Assembly (NCBI GenBank): GCA_048013815.1
Contig: CM106586.1
Span: forward strand, 6,076,001-6,140,000
DNA from: Setoptus koraiensis
Lineage: Eukaryota; Animalia; Arthropoda
Direction: 5' to 3'
DNA length: 64,000 nt
The first letter of the stretch is position 1. The number at the start of each line of letters is the position of its first letter. The notes under the pieces were generated by a model. The model did not search any database. It saw only the letters and a list, made by a program, of their open reading frames with translations, and was not told where the DNA came from. The position numbers and the translations under genes are program-made. Positions 19,423-36,932 of the stretch are shown one piece after another.

Positions 19423-19510
19423 GCATCGCTCGGCTTGAAACTTTGTCTCGACCTCTGGCCGTAACGTTGCCCAAAGATTAGGTGAGCAAAGTTTCAGGTG
19501 TATCGGTGCC
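19423..19510 (+). ncRNA. mir-87: microRNA precursor mir-87 (mature 3p arm about 19482-19503)
   Basis: 19482-19503 GTGAGCAAAGTTTCAGGTGTAT matches recalled arthropod miR-87-3p (GUGAGCAAAGUUUCAGGUGUGU) at 21/22 nt. The 5p arm CGGCTTGAAACTTTGTCTCGACCT (19431-19454) pairs with it, and basal pairing extends to GCATCG/CGGTGC. Confidence 0.9.
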
Positions 19511-26600: not shown

Positions 26601-27478
26601 GCCTCCTCACCTGTGCTCACCTGTAGCTGTAGCCGTAGCCGTAGCTGCAGTATTGGTATAGTAAGTGCTCGCTAGTTGCAGCAGCAGCGGCAGCAGCACT
26701 GGCTGCCGGCCTAGACAAAGACACAATGCAACGACATTAATTTGATGTCGTTGATTCGGACTTACGCTTACAAAAGATGATTTGTCGTAGCAGTGTTGTT
26801 GTGTACAACAACAACACTAATGGTTACGTAATACTAATACCAACGTAATGTTATCTATCATGCTGTCTGGTGTCGGTGCCGCTGGCGCTGGCGCAAAATG
26901 AGCAAACTGGCGCCGATAATGTGCAACTTGGCTCTCAAAAACAACCTCAGACCTCTCCCTCTCTCGCTCTGTCTGGCTCGTTACAAGTATCATACTTTGC
27001 GACGGAGAAGCGCTCAGCCGTTTCTGGCAAGTCGTTGTTGTTTTGCCTTTATCAAACCACTGCTGCCTCATCTGATGCTCATGCTGCTGGAACGCTGTGT
27101 CTATAAGCGTTGCCGCAACAGCAGCAGCAGCAGCAGATACCGGCGCTTGTCAGACAATCAGTAGTCGGTAATATAACGTGGGAGCATTGCTATTATATAA
27201 CAATTACTATTATTTACAATTATTTGTCGTTATTTGTGTTGTGTGTGTGTGTGCCGATGATTATTATTGTGATAGACGCACAATGCCAGATTAAAGATTA
27301 GCCACAGAGAGACAGCATCGCATCAGACAGTATGGCACACACACACACACAATTGCGTAATTATTATTATGCACACTTCAATCTAAAGCTGCAAAAGGTA
27401 TCTAGGGTACCATCGAGGGTATAGTGTACGCACTAGGCTGTGTCTAAAGCATACTGTGTAGTGTATCGATCTACTTAC

Positions 27479-28787
27479 ATGTTAGTGCAACAAACAACAA
27501 TATCACCGTGTATCTCACTAGTTTTCTTTTGCCTCGCATTGATCTCGGCGGTGGGCGCCATTTAACGTCAGGCATGCTACGGGTACTACTTGTTGAATCG
27601 TTGCCTATCACATCCTCATAGCGATTGCGCGCCACCTTGTGTCCGGAACTCACTCTTTCCACTGGTGACACTATAGCGACTTTGGGCGTTACATGCTCGC
27701 CAATACTGGCCACTCTGGAGCCTGGCAAGTCAAAACTCTTGTAAGTGTTGCCATAATGATCGGCTAGGGGTGCTTTAGAGCCCATTTGTTGCTGCTGTGG
27801 ACTTGCAGTTGTCATATTTGTTGCCGGTGTCAGTGTGTAATTGGCTGACAACGTGTATGACGTGGCCATGGTTGCTCCGAATGAATTTTGCATATTATCC
27901 AAATTGTGTCGCTTACGCCAATAACTTGTCAAAAAATCGTTGGCCTGATCATGGGCCGATGTTGGTGTTGTCAGCACCAGATTGTTGTTATTAAATTGCT
28001 GTTGTCTTTGTGAGTTGCATTTGTCGTCGTCGTCGTTGTCTTGTCTCTGCTGTTGTTTGTTTATTTTTGCCATAGACTCTGTCAGGTTGATCTCTTTGAT
28101 TTTGCTCGGTAGGTCTAGCTTGTCGCGGGCCGCTCGAGGTCGATAGGCATAAAATAGACGCTCGTCAATGTAGGGCCACATTATTGTCCAGGGCACATAA
28201 AATTGTAGTCCATAGGATAGGCCGATTGCCATGGCGAACATGAGCCGCACAAATTCATTCAATGTTGTCTTGGGCAAATTGATTGTTATGGATCCATTGA
28301 TAAATTGGCCATACTTGAGGTAACCAAAATAACCCATGGCCATGTATAATAGACCAACTAACATCATTGATGTGTTTAGAACACCATTGAAGCCGGGAAA
28401 CAATTCGGGCCGTTCCATTTCTTTGACTAAAGGCAACACAACGCCAATACCTTCGAAGGCATAGACAGCCGTGGCGAAAAACAAAGGCAGACCAGCAACG
28501 AGATCGCTGCTGACACTATTGACAATTGTACCTCCATCATCCACTATTAACTGTTCCATTGATGTAATATTGTTTATAAATGTTGTCGATGTTGTTGTTG
28601 TCGAGTGTAACTGAAACAAATCGGCAAATATGAGCGACAGGCCAGTTAATTGAAGAACATTGGCAATGGTGCTTATTACGGACAAATGCTTCAGGTTGCT
28701 TATGCAACTGGTCAGTCCAATTACGGGGAACAATATGAGCATGTAGCTAGAGGTGCTCAGATGTATTGTGAACAAATTGAACATGGC
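27479..28787 (-). CDS. SLC36A: SLC36 transporter, coding exon 2 of 4 (contains a very long loop insertion)
   Basis: Acceptor tatacAG at 28789-28788 closes a 109-bp intron in frame. Encodes LPLFFATAVYAFEGIGVVLPL, YMAMGYFGYLKYG, GSITINLP and LSYGLQFYVP. Phase-1 donor GTAAGT at 27478-27473. Confidence 0.92.
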
Positions 28788-28896
28788 CTGTATATGAAAT
28801 AAACCAATATAAATATATAATAATCTCGTTAATTATAAGCCATAACGACACTGAGCTAAGACAAAATCATTGTCTTGTCAACTTGTAGATACTCAC

Positions 28897-29514
28897 CAGT
28901 TGGATATTCTCAATGACAAACATTATATAGACACAGCAGAAACCAAACTGTGTAAACATGAGAAACGAAGTGACCACTGTCTGGGCGATTTTTGCGTAAC
29001 GTCTCGCACATTTTGGACCGATTGCCATAGCCAGGGCGGCCACTTGATCGTAGTCCAATGACTCATAATTAAAACGATCGCACAACCTGTTGTGACTACT
29101 AATTAATATGTGCATACAATGCACACAAATTGTACCAATTATTGGCACCAATAAAAAGCCTAGCCAGAGGCCAACATTTTTAAAGGCATTGGGCATTGCC
29201 AGAACTCCGGTGCCAATATTTGCCTTTAACACGTGCATCATTGTTTGTAAATCGCTTGTTTTGTTGTTTGAGTCGCCACAATCGGCTAACAGTAATAAAT
29301 TGTTACCATTGTCGTCATCGTTGTGGCCATCATTGAAACAATTTCTTCTGCTATTGTCTCTCTCAAATATTATACCGGGTCTGGACTTTCCAGACTGGCT
29401 GTACTGCTGCTGTTGCTGTTGATTGTGTGATTGTGATTGTATTATATCCGGCTTTTTAATTGAATCTCTCAAATTATGCTTATATGATGATGAGGGCGAA
29501 GTTGAATTCTCCAT
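28897..29514 (-). CDS. SLC36A: Proton-coupled amino acid transporter (SLC36/AAAP family, pathetic-like), coding exon 1 of 4
   Basis: ATG at 29514 with an in-frame stop upstream. Encodes TSDLQTMMHVLKANIGTGVLAMPNAF (TM1 signature), LLVPIIGTICVHCMHIL and TQFGFCCVYIMFV. Phase-0 donor GTGAGT at 28896-28891. Confidence 0.92.
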
Positions 29515-30372: not shown

Positions 30373-30872
30373 NNNNNNNNNNNNNNNNNNNNNNNNNNNN
30401 NNNNNNNNNNNNNNNNNNNNNNNNNNNNNNNNNNNNNNNNNNNNNNNNNNNNNNNNNNNNNNNNNNNNNNNNNNNNNNNNNNNNNNNNNNNNNNNNNNNN
30501 NNNNNNNNNNNNNNNNNNNNNNNNNNNNNNNNNNNNNNNNNNNNNNNNNNNNNNNNNNNNNNNNNNNNNNNNNNNNNNNNNNNNNNNNNNNNNNNNNNNN
30601 NNNNNNNNNNNNNNNNNNNNNNNNNNNNNNNNNNNNNNNNNNNNNNNNNNNNNNNNNNNNNNNNNNNNNNNNNNNNNNNNNNNNNNNNNNNNNNNNNNNN
30701 NNNNNNNNNNNNNNNNNNNNNNNNNNNNNNNNNNNNNNNNNNNNNNNNNNNNNNNNNNNNNNNNNNNNNNNNNNNNNNNNNNNNNNNNNNNNNNNNNNNN
30801 NNNNNNNNNNNNNNNNNNNNNNNNNNNNNNNNNNNNNNNNNNNNNNNNNNNNNNNNNNNNNNNNNNNNNNNN
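30373..30872. other. Assembly gap (500 N)
   Basis: Run of exactly 500 N. The round size suggests a scaffolding placeholder. ORFs spanning it are artefacts. Confidence 0.99.
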
Positions 30873-31050
30873 GACACAAAATCGATCCGACGCCTTTATC
30901 CAACATAGGTGATATAATTATTCCAAAGAAGATACCTCACAAGTCAGTCAGTTGAGGTTTTAATAGGTCATTGTTTGCTCAGCTCGATCAACTAAGAAGA
31001 TTCACGCTAAAGTCGGTGCTCATCATGCTGAAGTCGGTTAGAGCTGCGTA

Positions 31051-33183
31051 TCACAGTAAATGAGGTTCACCTTGTAATCCCAACTTTTTTAATTTGCTGA
31101 ATAGAGGCATAACTGTACAATTAAGGTATCCATCAATCTGACTCTCATCAACAATACAATGGGGGTCCTCTCCACCAATCAATATGATCCTTCTCGGTAG
31201 ATGCTGCAAAATTAATCGAACTTGGGGTAAATCAACAGGCTTATTTTGGGTGTCGATGATAATTACTGAATCTACTTTGATCCAGTCCCAATCGATTAAC
31301 CTGGACAAATTATTGTAGGTACAACACAATACTTGTGACTTCTTCACAATCTTATATGCACATTCTGATTGATATCGAATCCAATTTCGTCTTGCTTGCT
31401 CATTAAGTTGAAAATATTCTGACGTTGTGATGACGTTGGTTTGTATTCCAGGGAATGTTACGGGTAATTCTTGCAAACGTTGATCTAAATAGAAAGACTT
31501 TTTGTTTTGGGGCGTATCGTACTTGGGACGAATGCTGACAATATCCAGGTTACCCATCTTGTGAATCCTATCAGCAAAATTGTCTAAAACAACATCTTCT
31601 ACAGAACAAACTAAAATTTTGGAATCTTCATTTTGCCTTGTTTCAAAGAGATGATTGGCCAGTGATGCGACCATCGATTCTTGGTTATCTTCAACAAGAT
31701 GCTTCGAAACTGCTGTTACTCTATGACTGATTGCATGATAAATCAAACTTTTCTGTTTATCATTTAGAATAGTACTCATATTATTCTCGCTTAGTTGAAC
31801 GTATCTGACTGAGTTCCTCACGTCATCGCGCGGAATAGAGTATTTAGAAGTCAGTATAATATCACAGAGGAGACTATCTGATAATACTCGTTGTTCATCA
31901 GATAATGCAAGACTCTTGCTTGCAAGAGCGCTTCGTAGATCTATATTTAAAACTTTGAAATCATCTTCAGCCATATCAGTGGAAAACAGTGAAGGAGTGA
32001 ACCCTCTACCACTGTTATTGAAGACGATATACATAAAAGATTCATCGTAGTCTTCATCGATATGAAAGTCATCTTTCGTTAGAACTATGCCCAGTACTAA
32101 TAATCTCTTTTTCTTACGACTTAAATATATTTGGTCACCTGGCAGTATATTTCGAGTGAACATGGGATCCATTGATTCGAGCTTTATCTTTGCGTAATCA
32201 AAAGTCCTTCTGCCTTCATTGATAGGTCCATAGATCACCGGCACGCACTCTTGTTGATACTCCTCTATCATTTGTTGTCTGCAATTGTCGAATATTGTCG
32301 CTAGCTGTTCTATCTTATCGATCTCTTCATCAGAGTAATCATCGTGGATGGTTTCGTGACCGCCGTCTCTACAATCAAAAAGTAGATGTACATTATCGGG
32401 TAATGCCGCAGATATGGGATCAATACCATTCAAGAGTTTAAGCTTTGGACATCTTCGAATTATTTCTGAGATTTCGTTCAAGGCATGATCTTCTAGTCCA
32501 CTATCGCTGGTCTTATTTTTGAACTGTATCGAAAGATACTCTAAATCTGGGCAAGATTGCACAAAATTTGTTGCATCAAATAGCATAGTGCTTGTTATGT
32601 CGAGTGATTGTAAGCTATATGATCCAGTTGCTTTAATATAAGCATCACTAGTGAAGCCAGGTCTATAGACCGTGACGTTTCGCATCTTAAGACGCAGTAC
32701 TCTATCCCGACAAACATCCATCACTCGACTTAATTCGGCCTCATCGTCCAACCTGGCATAATCCAATATCAGCGTTATTATTTTATCACATTTGGTCACT
32801 ATTGAAAGCAGTTCATGAGAGGCTAGTGGCACTCTGGTCAAATTCAAGCTTAATAAATTTTTACAGTTATCCGTTATAAGCCGATGGTCATTGTGCTTGA
32901 TCCTTCTAATGACACTCATTTTCTTTTGATTTGAGAAATTGGCTTCTTTCAGATTTGGTACCTGTGTTAATAGTGGCTCGAGATCTTGAAACTCGAATGA
33001 TCTTGATTTATACTTATCGAACGATATAGTCTTGATACGCCTGTAAGAGTCAATGACCAGTCTATTAAGGCTCTTGCTGACTTGACACAAGCGGCCGCGA
33101 TCGCCAAAATTGTGGACATGGCTGATGACACACAACCAGATATCATCGGGCAATTGTTCAAATGAGTATTTTTGTTCATCCAT
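31051..33183 (-). CDS. F-box/LRR protein fused to a degenerate Upf1-like (SF1B) helicase module, 710 aa, single ORF
   Basis: N-terminal F-box ([16 protein letters not shown]...RLCQVSKSL) is followed by FBXL-type LRRs ([37 protein letters not shown]). The C-terminal ~420 aa are colinear with Upf1 1B/RecA1: [20 protein letters not shown]...[35 protein letters not shown]. Confidence 0.8.
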   Translation of the reverse strand: [710 protein letters not shown]

Positions 33184-36053
33184 ACTGATTGAATTCTCCT
33201 AGCGCCTGGTTTATCCTGGTTTATCTTTTATATAATGGGAACAATAAAGATCTGAAAAGCATATTGAAATGACTAATCATTTCAAATTGTTAGATACAAC
33301 TTGTATCATACAAGTGCAGTCTATGAGACGTTCGATTTGTTTTTTGCTTACAAGAGCTGCCGGCTGTTTTGTGTATGAGCATGTGTGTGCCATGTTTTTG
33401 ATAAACACGGACGGCAGACGCAAAACGACTTCTCAAGCTGACTTGGTTGACACAAACTCATATTCCAATGAGATGAGGCCAGACCCAAAGTCTGACCTAA
33501 TCTGACCCTGTTGGACCACAAATTCCAGTTATTCGGGAGCCTGAACCTAATCTAGACATGTATCACATGTGACAATCGTATAGATTTTTGCTGAAACTAT
33601 CGTGTCTCTAACTATGACAAACATTAAACAAACAACATGAGATTATGAGAACGATCGGTACACTTAAACAATCGACAAGGCCTACATCGGACTGGACGAT
33701 TACAAAACGATGCGAACGAAAGTGGGACCTGTATCAGATCAATAGAGCTTCCGAGCCAATCAATCGAAGGTACCATCCGTGGCTAGATCCTTGGAGCCTT
33801 ATGTTATGTAAAGATGAATTCTCTGTTGTGATACTACCATTCTAATGATGAGTTAGAGTCATACTAGCACAAGGCTGGTATATCATATACTAATGATCAA
33901 GTTCATATTATTTGAATCTATTCATTGACTTGCTAAGTCCCAGAATTTATCCAGCATGCAGAGAATCACAAGATTATGACAATGGCGACATTGTCACCTC
34001 GTGCAAATAAAGAACTTGAACGATTGGTGAAATCAATGTTCAAAATATTCGATCGGTCTGTATTTTTGCTTACACTGTCATTATGTCATGAATATGTTCG
34101 TTAAAACATTGAGACAACAAATCAGACACATGTGAAAGCATAGATATGTTCCATGGAATACAGGCAAGTAACTCTACGGATGCAAGGTAAATAATAACAA
34201 TGAACAAGACTCGAACATGTTCAATAACTTACATCTCTTCATACTATTCAATATACATATCAAATTAAAACTCTTTATATTTATACAAACTTGTAACAAA
34301 CAAAAACTTTCCTAAAACCAAAACCAACTTTATTAACCTGACTATCGCTAGCGGGCAGTGAGAACGTCTCCGAAGCCGAGGGTCAATACTGTGGATCTGG
34401 AAACTTCTTTTAAGCGTTACCCTTTAACCTGTTTCAATGAATTCGAACCTATCATGCTACTTGTTTATTTCTAGCTAATATCTGACGCCCGTGTTCGAAT
34501 CTCTCAGCAACAGATGTTGTGGAGTCATCTACTGTAAGGTTTGTAACGGTATCTCTATCCTAATAAATATGCAGAAACTTTGCTTGGCCCTTCGAGTTGC
34601 GTCGATCTAGACCAATGAGAAGCCCATCCGAGTCTAGTAACTGAGTGGTAGGTTTTCTTGCGAGCGCTGCCCGAAAATTTCCTCAGGGTATAAGGTGACG
34701 ATCACCAGGTTATCTATTCGTTGCTTTGAAATCATAACATTCCCATAGTATAACTATGGATGACGCAATCATATCATCATATCATATTTGCAAATGGATA
34801 TGGAGAATTTTCACCTTTATCGATGTGTAATCTGCACCTCCCCGATTTTCAAGGTTTCATCGAATTTCCGGCCAGGTTTTCAGCACCTTAAACAAAATCC
34901 AGAATGTTCCAATTAACCTTGTCTAGTTGTGCACTAAATCATTGATTGATCTATCGAGGTGTAAGTTATTCACTGTAAATCCGCTATGAATAACCTGATT
35001 CATTCTTATTCGTGTCTACCCCACCGACAAGTTTTCTTACGAATTCTCTTAAAGAATTGTTCTCTCGCAACAACTGATCTTTTTGATCTTGATTGTATGT
35101 GCTGTCTGTTATATAATGCATGCTTTACTAACTAGACTTGGTACAGACAGCAAACATGTCATAGGACACATAGTTCACACGATCGGAAGTTAGCAGTAGA
35201 TTCGGCTCAAGGGAACAGCATTACTGTTGCATTGTACTGTTGCATAACACTGTTCTGAACTGAACTAAGAATTTTGGAACTAATGACACCTGTGTGTTCT
35301 CTTTCTTCGAATGGTAAACAAACACAAGACACATTATCATGGAATTTCTGTAAGAAAGTTGTAGACGTAATGTGAGAGTTATGATCTCATTATGATTACA
35401 AGTATTCAAAGTGTTGTTGTCTAAGATCGTCAAGATTGGTTTCTTTTGAGCACTAAAGCTCACATAATCATGCTAATCATAGTGGAAAAATGACAAGTTT
35501 TTAAGAGACAATTTTTTATGTTGAAAATATGTTCTCATATCGGCAAGATAATGGATCAAAGTTCTTGGTTGGTTTTCTCCTGAAACGTCGCATAAGAAGT
35601 TGCAATTATTGATTGGTTATTCGAGGTCATATTATGATAATGCAACAAAAATAATGAGCTACCATAATTTGATCTAAGCTAACACCTATCACCCTATTAT
35701 CTATAGCTGCTGAACTTTTTTTTTCTGTCCAAAATAGTGATAAAGAAGGACAACCTTTCGTAGCTGTTATCTCAGACATATCTAACTATATTGTTCATTT
35801 ATACAAAAAGGCGTCTATACAGTAATTATAAGCTAAACAGTGTGCGACATAAATTTGCTTGTTTCGAACATTTTTTCTAGTATAATATTTCGTGCAGAGA
35901 CCCAATACCCCTTCAATCAATTCGAGTCATTCGTTCAGTAATCTTTCAGAAATATATCTTCATCTCAGCCTCAAACTTCTCATTTGTAACAGCAGCATAT
36001 ATATAAAGTTATATTCAAAGTTTAAGGGAATAGTCCATCCTAGCGACAACATT

Positions 36054-36932
36054 ATGCCATCAAAATCCAGATTATGCAGCTATTTGACGATGTTCCTCGT
36101 CTGCGTTATAGGAGCGTCTGAGGCGTTCCCGTTAGATCTTATACCGACAAAGTTGTTCGGTTTTGAGCAACACAACGCCATTGAACATAACGGGGAATTG
36201 AGTGGAGGTGAGTCTAATCATAAACAACAGGTGGAAATGATTCCAGGTGGAAGTGTCATTGGTTCGCTAGATAGAATTGATTCGGTGCCAGCAAAACACC
36301 AATCAGGCAACTTTGGACAGAGATACAACTATCATCAACAACAACAAAACTCTGTTAACGCCAACAACAACAACGACGAATTTAATCCTTCGATTCCGAA
36401 ATTTGAAGCAAGTCACGAGCAATCATACTACAGCAAACAATCAAACGATGCTGATGCATCATCGGGACAAGAGGCAACATCCAGCGATGGACTCCAGCAA
36501 AATTCTGCTCCTCAATCTACCGACAGTAATGACAATGGTAGATCAGCGACAGAGGAGAGCATTGAGAAAATTCAAAGCAAAGTTGAGGCCGAATTGAAAG
36601 ATGTCAAAGATTTTAAACATTACAAAGAGATAGCCTCTGAGCCTCGAGAAGACCATCACGAAGATGAACATCAAAATCATCACGAAGACCACCATGAGGA
36701 ACATCATCACGAGGAGCCAAAGAAACAAGAGGAACACTCTCATGGACATCATCATGAGGAATCATACAAGCATCCCGAACCAGAAAAGAAACATGATCAC
36801 GAGGAACACCATGACAACCACGAAGAGCACCATGGACACCACGAAGAACATCATCACACACCTGAGGCATTTGAGGTTCACCACAAGAAAGGAGGCAAGA
36901 GCTTCCAATATTTTCATCAGAAACATCGTTGA
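36054..36932 (+). CDS. Putative secreted His/Glu-rich protein, 292 aa
   Basis: The first ATG of the ORF (36054) is followed by a signal-peptide-like MPSKSRLCSYLTMFLVCVIGASEA|F. The C-terminal ~95 aa carry about 30 His interleaved with Glu/Asp and end in PEAFEVHHKKGGKSFQYFHQKHR. Confidence 0.75.
   Translation: MPSKSRLCSYLTMFLVCVIGASEAFPLDLIPTKLFGFEQHNAIEHNGELSGGESNHKQQVEMIPGGSVIGSLDRIDSVPAKHQSGNFGQRYNYHQQQQNSVNANNNNDEFNPSIPKFEASHEQSYYSKQSNDADASSGQEATSSDGLQQNSAPQSTDSNDNGRSATEESIEKIQSKVEAELKDVKDFKHYKEIASEPREDHHEDEHQNHHEDHHEEHHHEEPKKQEEHSHGHHHEESYKHPEPEKKHDHEEHHDNHEEHHGHHEEHHHTPEAFEVHHKKGGKSFQYFHQKHR

Follow-up and report, generated by a model that had tools for sequence, protein, structure and literature searches.

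An F-box protein of Setoptus koraiensis with predicted leucine-rich repeats that carries a catalytically dead half of an Upf1-type helicase

The gene and its parts

The arthropod Setoptus koraiensis carries, on contig CM106586.1 of assembly GCA_048013815.1, a gene that joins an F-box and predicted leucine-rich repeats (LRRs) to one half of an Upf1-type helicase from which the catalytic motifs have been lost. We analysed the 64,000 nucleotides from position 6,076,001 to 6,140,000 of this contig (the window, whose first base is position 1 in the coordinates given here), in which the gene occupies a single uninterrupted open reading frame (ORF) of 710 amino acids (aa) plus stop at 31051..33183 on the minus strand, with no internal stops and no N. 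The architecture is real, is conserved across the members of the family and appears to be new. Outside this genome, the relatives whose contigs were traced (P0001 to P0005 and the two complete helicases P0006 and P0008) all derive from a single Logan sample, SRR33593474. A sequence-only reading of the window had described an intronless 710-aa ORF with an F-box, LRRs and an Upf1-core-like part, and the ORF itself, Pfam, profile comparisons and the predicted fold all agree with that description; the motif strings that it quoted (KHLVEDNQ, DTQ and GGEDPH) are exact, as are their coordinates. The parts of the gene, and the assembly gap beside it, are as follows.

31051..33183, minus strand: whole coding sequence, intronless, colinear from start to stop with the ortholog P0001 and the paralogs P0002-P0004
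33037..33162, minus strand: F-box, residues 8-49, Pfam F-box-like (PF12937), motif [9 protein letters not shown].H
32419..32988, minus strand: predicted Cys-containing LRRs, about 6-7, of the F-box-LRR (FBXL) type, residues ~66-255, from a family profile compared with solved F-box-LRR structures
32257..32376, minus strand: acidic linker and long helix (stalk), residues 270-309, AlphaFold2 helix at module residues 3-27
31945..32256, minus strand: domain 1B-like beta-barrel, residues ~310-413, from AlphaFold2 strands (module residues 28-131) and covered by hhalign
31078..31767, minus strand: RecA1-like domain, residues 473-702, from the alignment and AlphaFold2 (predicted local distance difference test, pLDDT, 65-90); its C-terminal limit is the RecA1/RecA2 border
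31348..31521, minus strand: domain 1C-like insertion within RecA1, residues ~555-612, from the alignment, with helices in the model; motif FPGIQ.N.IT
31681..31704, minus strand: former Walker A, KHLVEDNQ, residues 494-501 (GPPGTGKT in helicases); variable in the paralogs, with indels
31246..31254, minus strand: former motif II, DTQ, residues 644-646 (DE.TQ in helicases); Asp kept, catalytic Glu lost
31159..31176, minus strand: former motif III, GGEDPH, residues 670-675 (GDH.QL in helicases)
30373..30872, no strand: scaffold gap of 500 N, outside the gene, which the stop precedes by 178 bp

The stalk region aligns with the segment that precedes domain 1B in UPF1 and leads into the helicase-derived module, whose 1B-like barrel bears the family-specific conserved patches YGPV, YAKI and YD.SF.Y. 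A run of 500 N is a conventional placeholder length and the true size of the gap may differ, and this restricts any conclusion on the 3' end of the gene. A public contig (run X1) reaches approximately 230 bases into this gap. Some 90 nt downstream of the stop stands an ATTAAA hexamer, a candidate poly(A) signal.

A C-terminal module homologous to Upf1-like helicases

The Pfam family AAA_11, which represents the RecA1 half of Upf1-like helicases, matches residues 473-554 below its threshold (E 4.8e-4, 20.4 bits against 27) and P0004 above it, and a protein-language-model search with residues 290-710 returned AAA_11 clusters only (score 0.97). A profile of the family, searched against 1.84 billion proteins, recovered P0006 with an E-value of 4e-33 and true UPF1 proteins with values between 1e-10 and 1e-5. 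The module, which is 14-19% identical to UPF1, is colinear with 19 aligned helicases, beginning at the helix that precedes 1B and ending with the final helix of RecA1, and in this alignment the stop of the ORF falls where the helicases run on into RecA2, at the '..L..QYRMHP' motif. A profile-profile comparison by hhalign of five family modules with ten CH-bearing UPF1 segments that include RecA2 gave a probability of 99.9% and an E-value of 4.5e-31 over 369 columns; family columns 21-425 correspond to UPF1 columns 49-426 of 631, a span that begins with 1B, closes where RecA1 closes and does not reach RecA2. The CH domain (PF09416) has no Pfam match in the F-box protein, P0006 or P0008 and is present in the true UPF1 matches. 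That the ORF would end where RecA1 ends, lacking RecA2 and the CH domain, had been read from the sequence alone and is borne out by the alignment, hhalign and Pfam.

The predicted fold points in the same direction. AlphaFold2 modelled the C-terminal module from 24 sequences (pLDDT 74.8, predicted template modelling score 0.67). The model opens with a long helix and a beta-barrel, after which two helices precede a beta-alpha-beta RecA fold that is interrupted by a helical insertion. The top 11 Foldseek matches in the PDB are all UPF1 (2gk6 with E 2.4e-15; 2xzo with a template modelling (TM) score of 0.58), followed by ZNFX1, SETX/Sen1, DNA2, IGHMBP2 and Aquarius, and among the AlphaFold models of Swiss-Prot proteins the top 11 are again all UPF1, from fungi, animals, plants and Dictyostelium, with the match covering human residues 309-710. 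A fold search of the ESM Atlas led to UPF1 clusters (TM score 0.67, root-mean-square deviation 4.5-4.9 over ~375 residues), and across the fold searches TM scores to UPF1 lie between 0.5 and 0.67. The C-terminal module is homologous to the Upf1-like helicases of superfamily 1B (SF1B), far beyond chance, and the profile and fold matches that the initial reading had expected were found by hhalign, Foldseek and the Atlas search. Neither Pfam nor Foldseek gave a significant UvrD match for the module, the best matches being to SF1B Upf1-like proteins.

Loss of catalysis and the surface of the module

In the alignment, none of the five members of the family retains Walker A, the Glu of motif II or motif III, and the replacement of Walker A, Walker B and motif III described for the window protein is shared by all five. 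The motifs compare as follows.

Motif I: GPPGTGKT in helicases, KHLVEDNQ here; the paralogs differ, with indels
Motif Ia: APSN in helicases, SVED here; ASD, ADN, ASD and DVD in the paralogs (Asn to Asp)
Motif II: DE..Q in helicases, DTQ.K here; Glu absent in 5/5
Motif III: GDH.QL in helicases, GGEDPH here

Both the strands of the core (KILVC, [10 protein letters not shown], RIILIG) and the LF.KL helix are kept and, because these elements persist and the motifs are replaced, the fold is preserved and the nucleotide pocket is gone.

The surface of the module has also changed, in ways that may indicate a loss of nucleic-acid binding. Motif Ia is an RNA-contacting motif of Upf1-type helicases, and here it has gained acidic residues, in four of the five members by insertion. 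The isoelectric point (pI) of RecA1 is 5.8-6.5 in four of the five members, as against 8.2-9.7 in the UPF1-type helicases used for comparison (with the exception of P0010, at 7.2). The acidic character of motif Ia and of RecA1 speaks against RNA binding by the module. The positions that are conserved in the family only form clusters, both in 1B (Y318-V321, Y330-I333 and Y379/D380/S382/F383/Y385) and in 1C (D567, R569, P574, F577-I580, N583, I585, T586, W601 and Y604). Taken with the acidic RecA1 and motif Ia, this family-specific conservation favours a role in protein recognition for the 1B/1C face.

These observations bear directly on the possibility that the half-helicase is an RNA sensor, binding RNA or ribonucleoprotein without ATP and bringing RNA-bound proteins to a Skp1-Cullin-F-box (SCF) complex. 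Such a role would make use of the retained 1B, 1C and RecA1 fold, elements that in Upf1 line part of the RNA channel, and of the hydrophobic core of motif Ia (KILVC) and the CCT strand, which are also kept; moreover, the module of P0004 is basic, with a pI of 8.4-9.0. However, the RecA2 half of the channel is missing, the Asn of motif Ia has become Asp, the motif has acidic insertions in four of the five members and RecA1 is acidic in as many, the protein has no CH domain or other interface for factors of nonsense-mediated decay (NMD), and its parent clade is not Upf1 itself. We consider RNA sensing unlikely, and RNA binding a weaker alternative to protein recognition. The sequence-only reading had gone further in suggesting a link between ubiquitination and RNA surveillance or NMD, and this finds no support, given the derivation of the module from a CH-less paralog clade, the missing UPF2-binding CH domain and the acidic motif Ia and RecA1.

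The F-box and the predicted leucine-rich repeats

The F-box-like match at residues 8-49 has an E-value of 8e-7 and scores 29.1 bits, above the Pfam gathering cut-off of 24.3, and an F-box is recognised by Pfam in six of the seven family N-termini. Single Pfam LRR matches lie below threshold (LRR_NXF1-5 with 26 bits against 30.5); LRR_NXF1-5 appears at this sub-threshold level in four members and LRR_4 in two. A profile built from the seven family N-termini matches MAX2/D3 (E 3.9e-4), the F-box protein 9kkx (1e-3), COI1 (2e-3) and TIR1 (2e-2) in the PDB. Profiles were needed for this, as a single-protein phmmer search of the PDB gave the TIR1 LRR as its sole match, at E 0.34. By eye, 6-7 repeats of ~25 aa can be picked out by a Cys-type 'C..L..L.L' signature, as in [52 protein letters not shown].

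Relatives and the origin of the fusion

Only P0001 (721 aa, 73% identity) and P0002 (723 aa, 48%), both of which combine an F-box with AAA_11, came up when 5.8 billion proteins were searched by a word index. The profile search of 1.84 billion cluster representatives added P0003 (704 aa) and P0004 (670 aa), which match nearly the whole profile, as well as the N-terminal-only P0005 (298 aa) and two fragments. The same search recovered P0006 over profile positions 283-707 at the E-value given above, the second full helicase P0008 at E 4e-20, and approximately 25 weak helicase matches with E-values of 1e-10 to 1e-3, all on profile positions ~470-707. UPF1_Zn_bind was found by Pfam in 10 of the 16 weaker matches that were scanned, identifying them as genuine UPF1 orthologs; by contrast P0006 and P0008 have AAA_11 and AAA_12 and lack both the CH domain and an F-box. 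Outside this lineage, the combination of F-box, LRR and helicase-derived domain was found in neither the 5.8 nor the 1.84 billion-protein search. No Atlas cluster of at least 50 members resembles the whole protein (best score 0.74), and a search of a collection of papers found no description of an F-box joined to an Upf1-like domain or pseudohelicase. The expectation that the architecture would prove new and unannotated elsewhere thus agrees with the protein databases, the Atlas and the literature. Absence of the family from curated databases follows from its belonging to a fast-evolving lineage without annotated close relatives; the septin-7 encoded in the window is at most 49% identical to that of any named animal.

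In a maximum-likelihood tree of the RecA1 columns, rooted by midpoint only, the five F-box modules are monophyletic (support 100/99) and sister to P0006 (98/93), followed by P0008 (100/97) and then by the UPF1s. P0008 has intact catalytic motifs (GPPGTGKT, DECTQ and GDDKQL), and its nearest named relatives are UPF1 orthologs of at most 37% identity, with only one closer relative, which is unnamed. P0006 (contig L003, 892-3366) has GPPGTGVT and NES at the corresponding places, so that the lysine of Walker A and the Asp of motif II are gone whereas RecA2 is kept, and begins with a hydrophobic, membrane-anchor-like N-terminus; from these motifs it would be a second kind of pseudo-helicase in the lineage. 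Both are single ORFs with no intron at the RecA1/RecA2 border, and clade signatures such as LPRRI before strand 5 are common to the F-box modules and the CH-less helicases. A RecA2 fragment at 3-128 of contig L003 suggests tandem helicase copies.

The tree indicates that the module stems from a lineage-specific clade of CH-less Upf1-like helicases and not from the NMD ortholog Upf1. Direct descent from Upf1 does not survive the tree, the at most 37% identity of P0008 to UPF1s, or the finding that P0006 is already without the Walker lysine. The other half of the fusion has a likely counterpart in P0005 (contig L007, 1354-2250), a stand-alone 298-aa F-box-LRR gene with an acidic tail, which has no helicase half since only 45 bp separate its stop from a downstream threonyl-tRNA synthetase gene. 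The simplest history would be that a gene of the P0005 type was fused to the 5' half of a helicase of the P0006/P0008 type, and catalysis may have been impaired before this fusion, on the branch shared with P0006.

P0004 (contig L006, 154-2166) ends after strand 5 (..RRMILVG) at motif III and is without the last ~35 residues of RecA1, and an LRR-like fragment on contig L002 (3518-3985, minus strand; 34% identity over 85 aa), lying tail-to-tail with P0002, is probably a remnant family copy.

A functional gene under purifying selection

Gene order and orientation on the contig that carries P0001 agree with those of the window, running from a septin through an alpha/beta hydrolase, a 279-aa gene and Rer1 to the F-box gene, and because of this synteny P0001 is the ortholog in a sister species. 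A mobile-element origin of the window copy was considered and rejected, given this ortholog in conserved synteny between housekeeping genes. By the Nei-Gojobori method, the ratio of nonsynonymous to synonymous divergence (dN/dS) between the two orthologs is 0.18 over the whole gene (dS 0.88). By region it is

F-box: 0.08
LRR: 0.17
residues 271-470: 0.20
dead RecA1: 0.19

so that each part of the protein lies far below the neutral value of 1, and the comparison with a sister species that had been proposed for the gene speaks clearly against neutrality. Between the reference and three sequencing runs there are eight variable sites, none of them in the coding sequence and all upstream of it, which lends weak support to the same conclusion. 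The gene is functional and under purifying selection, and is not decaying.

The contrary view would be that the gene model is incomplete, with exons for RecA2 hidden in the N gap, or that the gene is a young, functionless pseudogene. A placeholder gap does begin 178 bp beyond the stop, and the three runs that cover 30880-35800 look genomic, covering intergenic sequence as evenly as the gene; they contain no splice joints or transcript ends over this interval. Against this, the stops of four of the five members agree in the alignment to within a few residues (that of P0004 is earlier), and the parental P0006 and P0008 have no intron at the RecA1/RecA2 border. When the RecA2 halves of P0006 and P0008 served as tblastn queries, neither the window nor the sequence downstream of the paralogs, which included 3.2 kb after the P0002 stop, yielded a remnant at E<=1, and a downstream sequence that would restore RecA2 was thereby sought and not found. 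With dN/dS and dS as given and the ORF intact in two species, an incomplete or decaying gene is highly improbable. The argument that the gap is too short to hold RecA2 was rejected, a run of 500 N being a placeholder.

A putative SCF substrate receptor

We put at roughly 60% the probability that the gene encodes an SCF substrate receptor that uses its pseudo-helicase as a protein-binding module. The N-terminal F-box would dock on Skp1, and the short arc of Cys-type LRRs would serve as a spacer and as part of the binding surface. At its distal end, in the position where FBXL proteins hold their substrates, would lie the ATPase-dead, RecA2-less remnant made up of the stalk, the 1B barrel and RecA1 with 1C. 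Since Walker A, the motif II Glu, motif III and the second RecA domain are all missing, there would be neither ATP hydrolysis nor closure of an RNA channel, and the family-specific patches of 1B and 1C would make the module a fixed surface for the recognition of a ligand that is most likely a protein. That the protein is an SCF receptor had been suggested at the outset and is still the best reading, in accord with an F-box above the Pfam threshold and an N-terminal profile that matches F-box-LRR receptors; we infer assembly with Skp1 and SCF, the type of ligand and the biological role.

Several points weigh against this reading. Binding to Skp1 and assembly with Cul1/Rbx1 are predicted from the F-box motif alone, and the LRRs are assigned from sub-threshold Pfam matches and profile E-values that are modest. 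When AlphaFold2 was given the whole protein (three sequences), pLDDT was 40, and ~30 in the N-terminal half, with no confident fold. The alignment behind the model of the module is dominated by real helicases, which biases the model towards their fold and makes it not independent of the sequence comparison. The basic module of P0004 means that loss of nucleic-acid binding is not uniform in the family, and the genomic appearance of the sequencing runs belongs here too.

Comparison with known systems helps to define what is unusual. Like the FBXL proteins Skp2 and FBXL3 and plant TIR1, COI1 and MAX2, the protein has an N-terminal F-box, here followed by predicted Cys-containing LRRs, from which a role as SCF receptor would be expected; however, the predicted LRR arc is short (~6-7 repeats), and the 430 aa of helicase origin that come after it have no parallel in any described FBXL protein. 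With UPF1/Nam7, the SF1B helicase of NMD (2GK6, 2XZO) and the best profile and fold match, it shares the order of stalk, 1B barrel, RecA1 and 1C, whereas the CH zinc domain, RecA2, Walker A, the motif II Glu and motif III are absent and RecA1 is acidic. To our knowledge, no well-known protein other than FBH1/FBXO18 combines an F-box with a superfamily 1 helicase, but the helicase of FBH1 is complete, active and of the UvrD type (SF1A), with no LRRs, in contrast to the half-length, dead SF1B module described here. As a general analogy, the C-terminal cassette of Brr2 is also a RecA-fold helicase module that has lost catalysis and been kept as an interaction platform, although it belongs to superfamily 2, keeps both RecA domains and binds ATP, whereas the present module has one RecA domain and no nucleotide pocket. 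Closest of all are P0006 and P0008, which share the stalk-1B-RecA1 layout and the clade signatures but keep RecA2 (AAA_12) and have no F-box, P0008 with all of its catalytic motifs and P0006 with the loss only of the Walker lysine and motif II Asp.

F-box proteins are modular, and a new substrate-binding domain usually means a new class of target. Here the putative substrate-binding domain is a pseudo-enzyme of RNA-helicase ancestry, which selection has maintained to a synonymous divergence of ~0.9 and which has duplicated several times, and the protein would be an F-box receptor of previously undescribed architecture. It offers a natural example of a motor protein that has been halved, inactivated and re-used as a recognition module, and points to a lineage-specific expansion of Upf1-like helicases that comprises one active form, one putatively membrane-anchored and half-dead form and the forms fused to an F-box. 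The practical weight of the finding is limited by the confinement of the family to a poorly known, fast-evolving invertebrate lineage.

Two other ways in which the module might be used can be proposed. By analogy with the integrated decoys of plant nucleotide-binding leucine-rich-repeat (NLR) receptors, the dead module might mimic an antiviral or anti-transposon Upf1-like helicase of the lineage, so that parasite proteins would be trapped and ubiquitinated. The family is indeed multi-copy, with at least four paralogs in the sister sample that have diverged strongly (32-50% identity), and the helicase clade from which the module came is likewise confined to the lineage and duplicated. Yet purifying selection acts on all domains of the ortholog pair (dN/dS 0.08-0.20), which show no trace of an arms race, there is no known parasite partner, and the idea is purely one of analogy with the plant decoys and with the F-box expansions of nematodes; we hold it to be quite unlikely. 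More speculative again is the wider proposal of an expanding SCF-receptor family built around a decoy of the lineage's own Upf1-like defence helicases, which would bait the helicase-disabling proteins of viruses and transposons for degradation. If true, it would represent an animal counterpart of the plant integrated decoys, built on the ubiquitin system.

The second possibility is that the module associates with an intact helicase of the P0008 type, or with its cofactors, and that SCF thereby controls helicase abundance. Pseudo-enzymes often regulate their active paralogs, and the module is the closest relative of those helicases, with which it shares the LPRRI signature before strand 5. However, there is no evidence that Upf1-like helicases oligomerise through RecA1 or 1B, and the patches conserved in the F-box family are not common to P0006 or P0008; we regard such pairing as very doubtful. 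Recognition of a protein ligand by the family-specific 1B/1C face remains the reading that we prefer.

Neighbouring genes

Between the F-box gene and a His-rich gene lies a Rer1 homolog (~33562-34294, plus strand), detected by tblastn in two pieces of 55% and 43% identity. It contains no ORF longer than 66 aa and is probably a pseudogene, whereas Rer1 of the sister contig is intact (210 aa). The His-rich gene (35892-36932, plus strand) encodes 346 aa, with a hydrophobic stretch at the N-terminal end and a long tail rich in His and Glu (HHEEHH-type repeats); it belongs to no Pfam family and is 85% identical to the 279-aa gene of the sister contig. On the other side of the F-box gene, an Aa_trans amino-acid transporter (27471-29514, minus strand) is encoded by two ORFs 82 bp apart, a distance that fits one short intron. 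This arrangement, together with long intronless genes of 710, 1136 and 623 aa, suggests an intron-poor genome. Further away, the window also contains a full-length mir-87 precursor (19424-19509, plus strand; Rfam RF00726), whose presence indicates a protostome animal and which scores 57.1 bits against a gathering score of 49.

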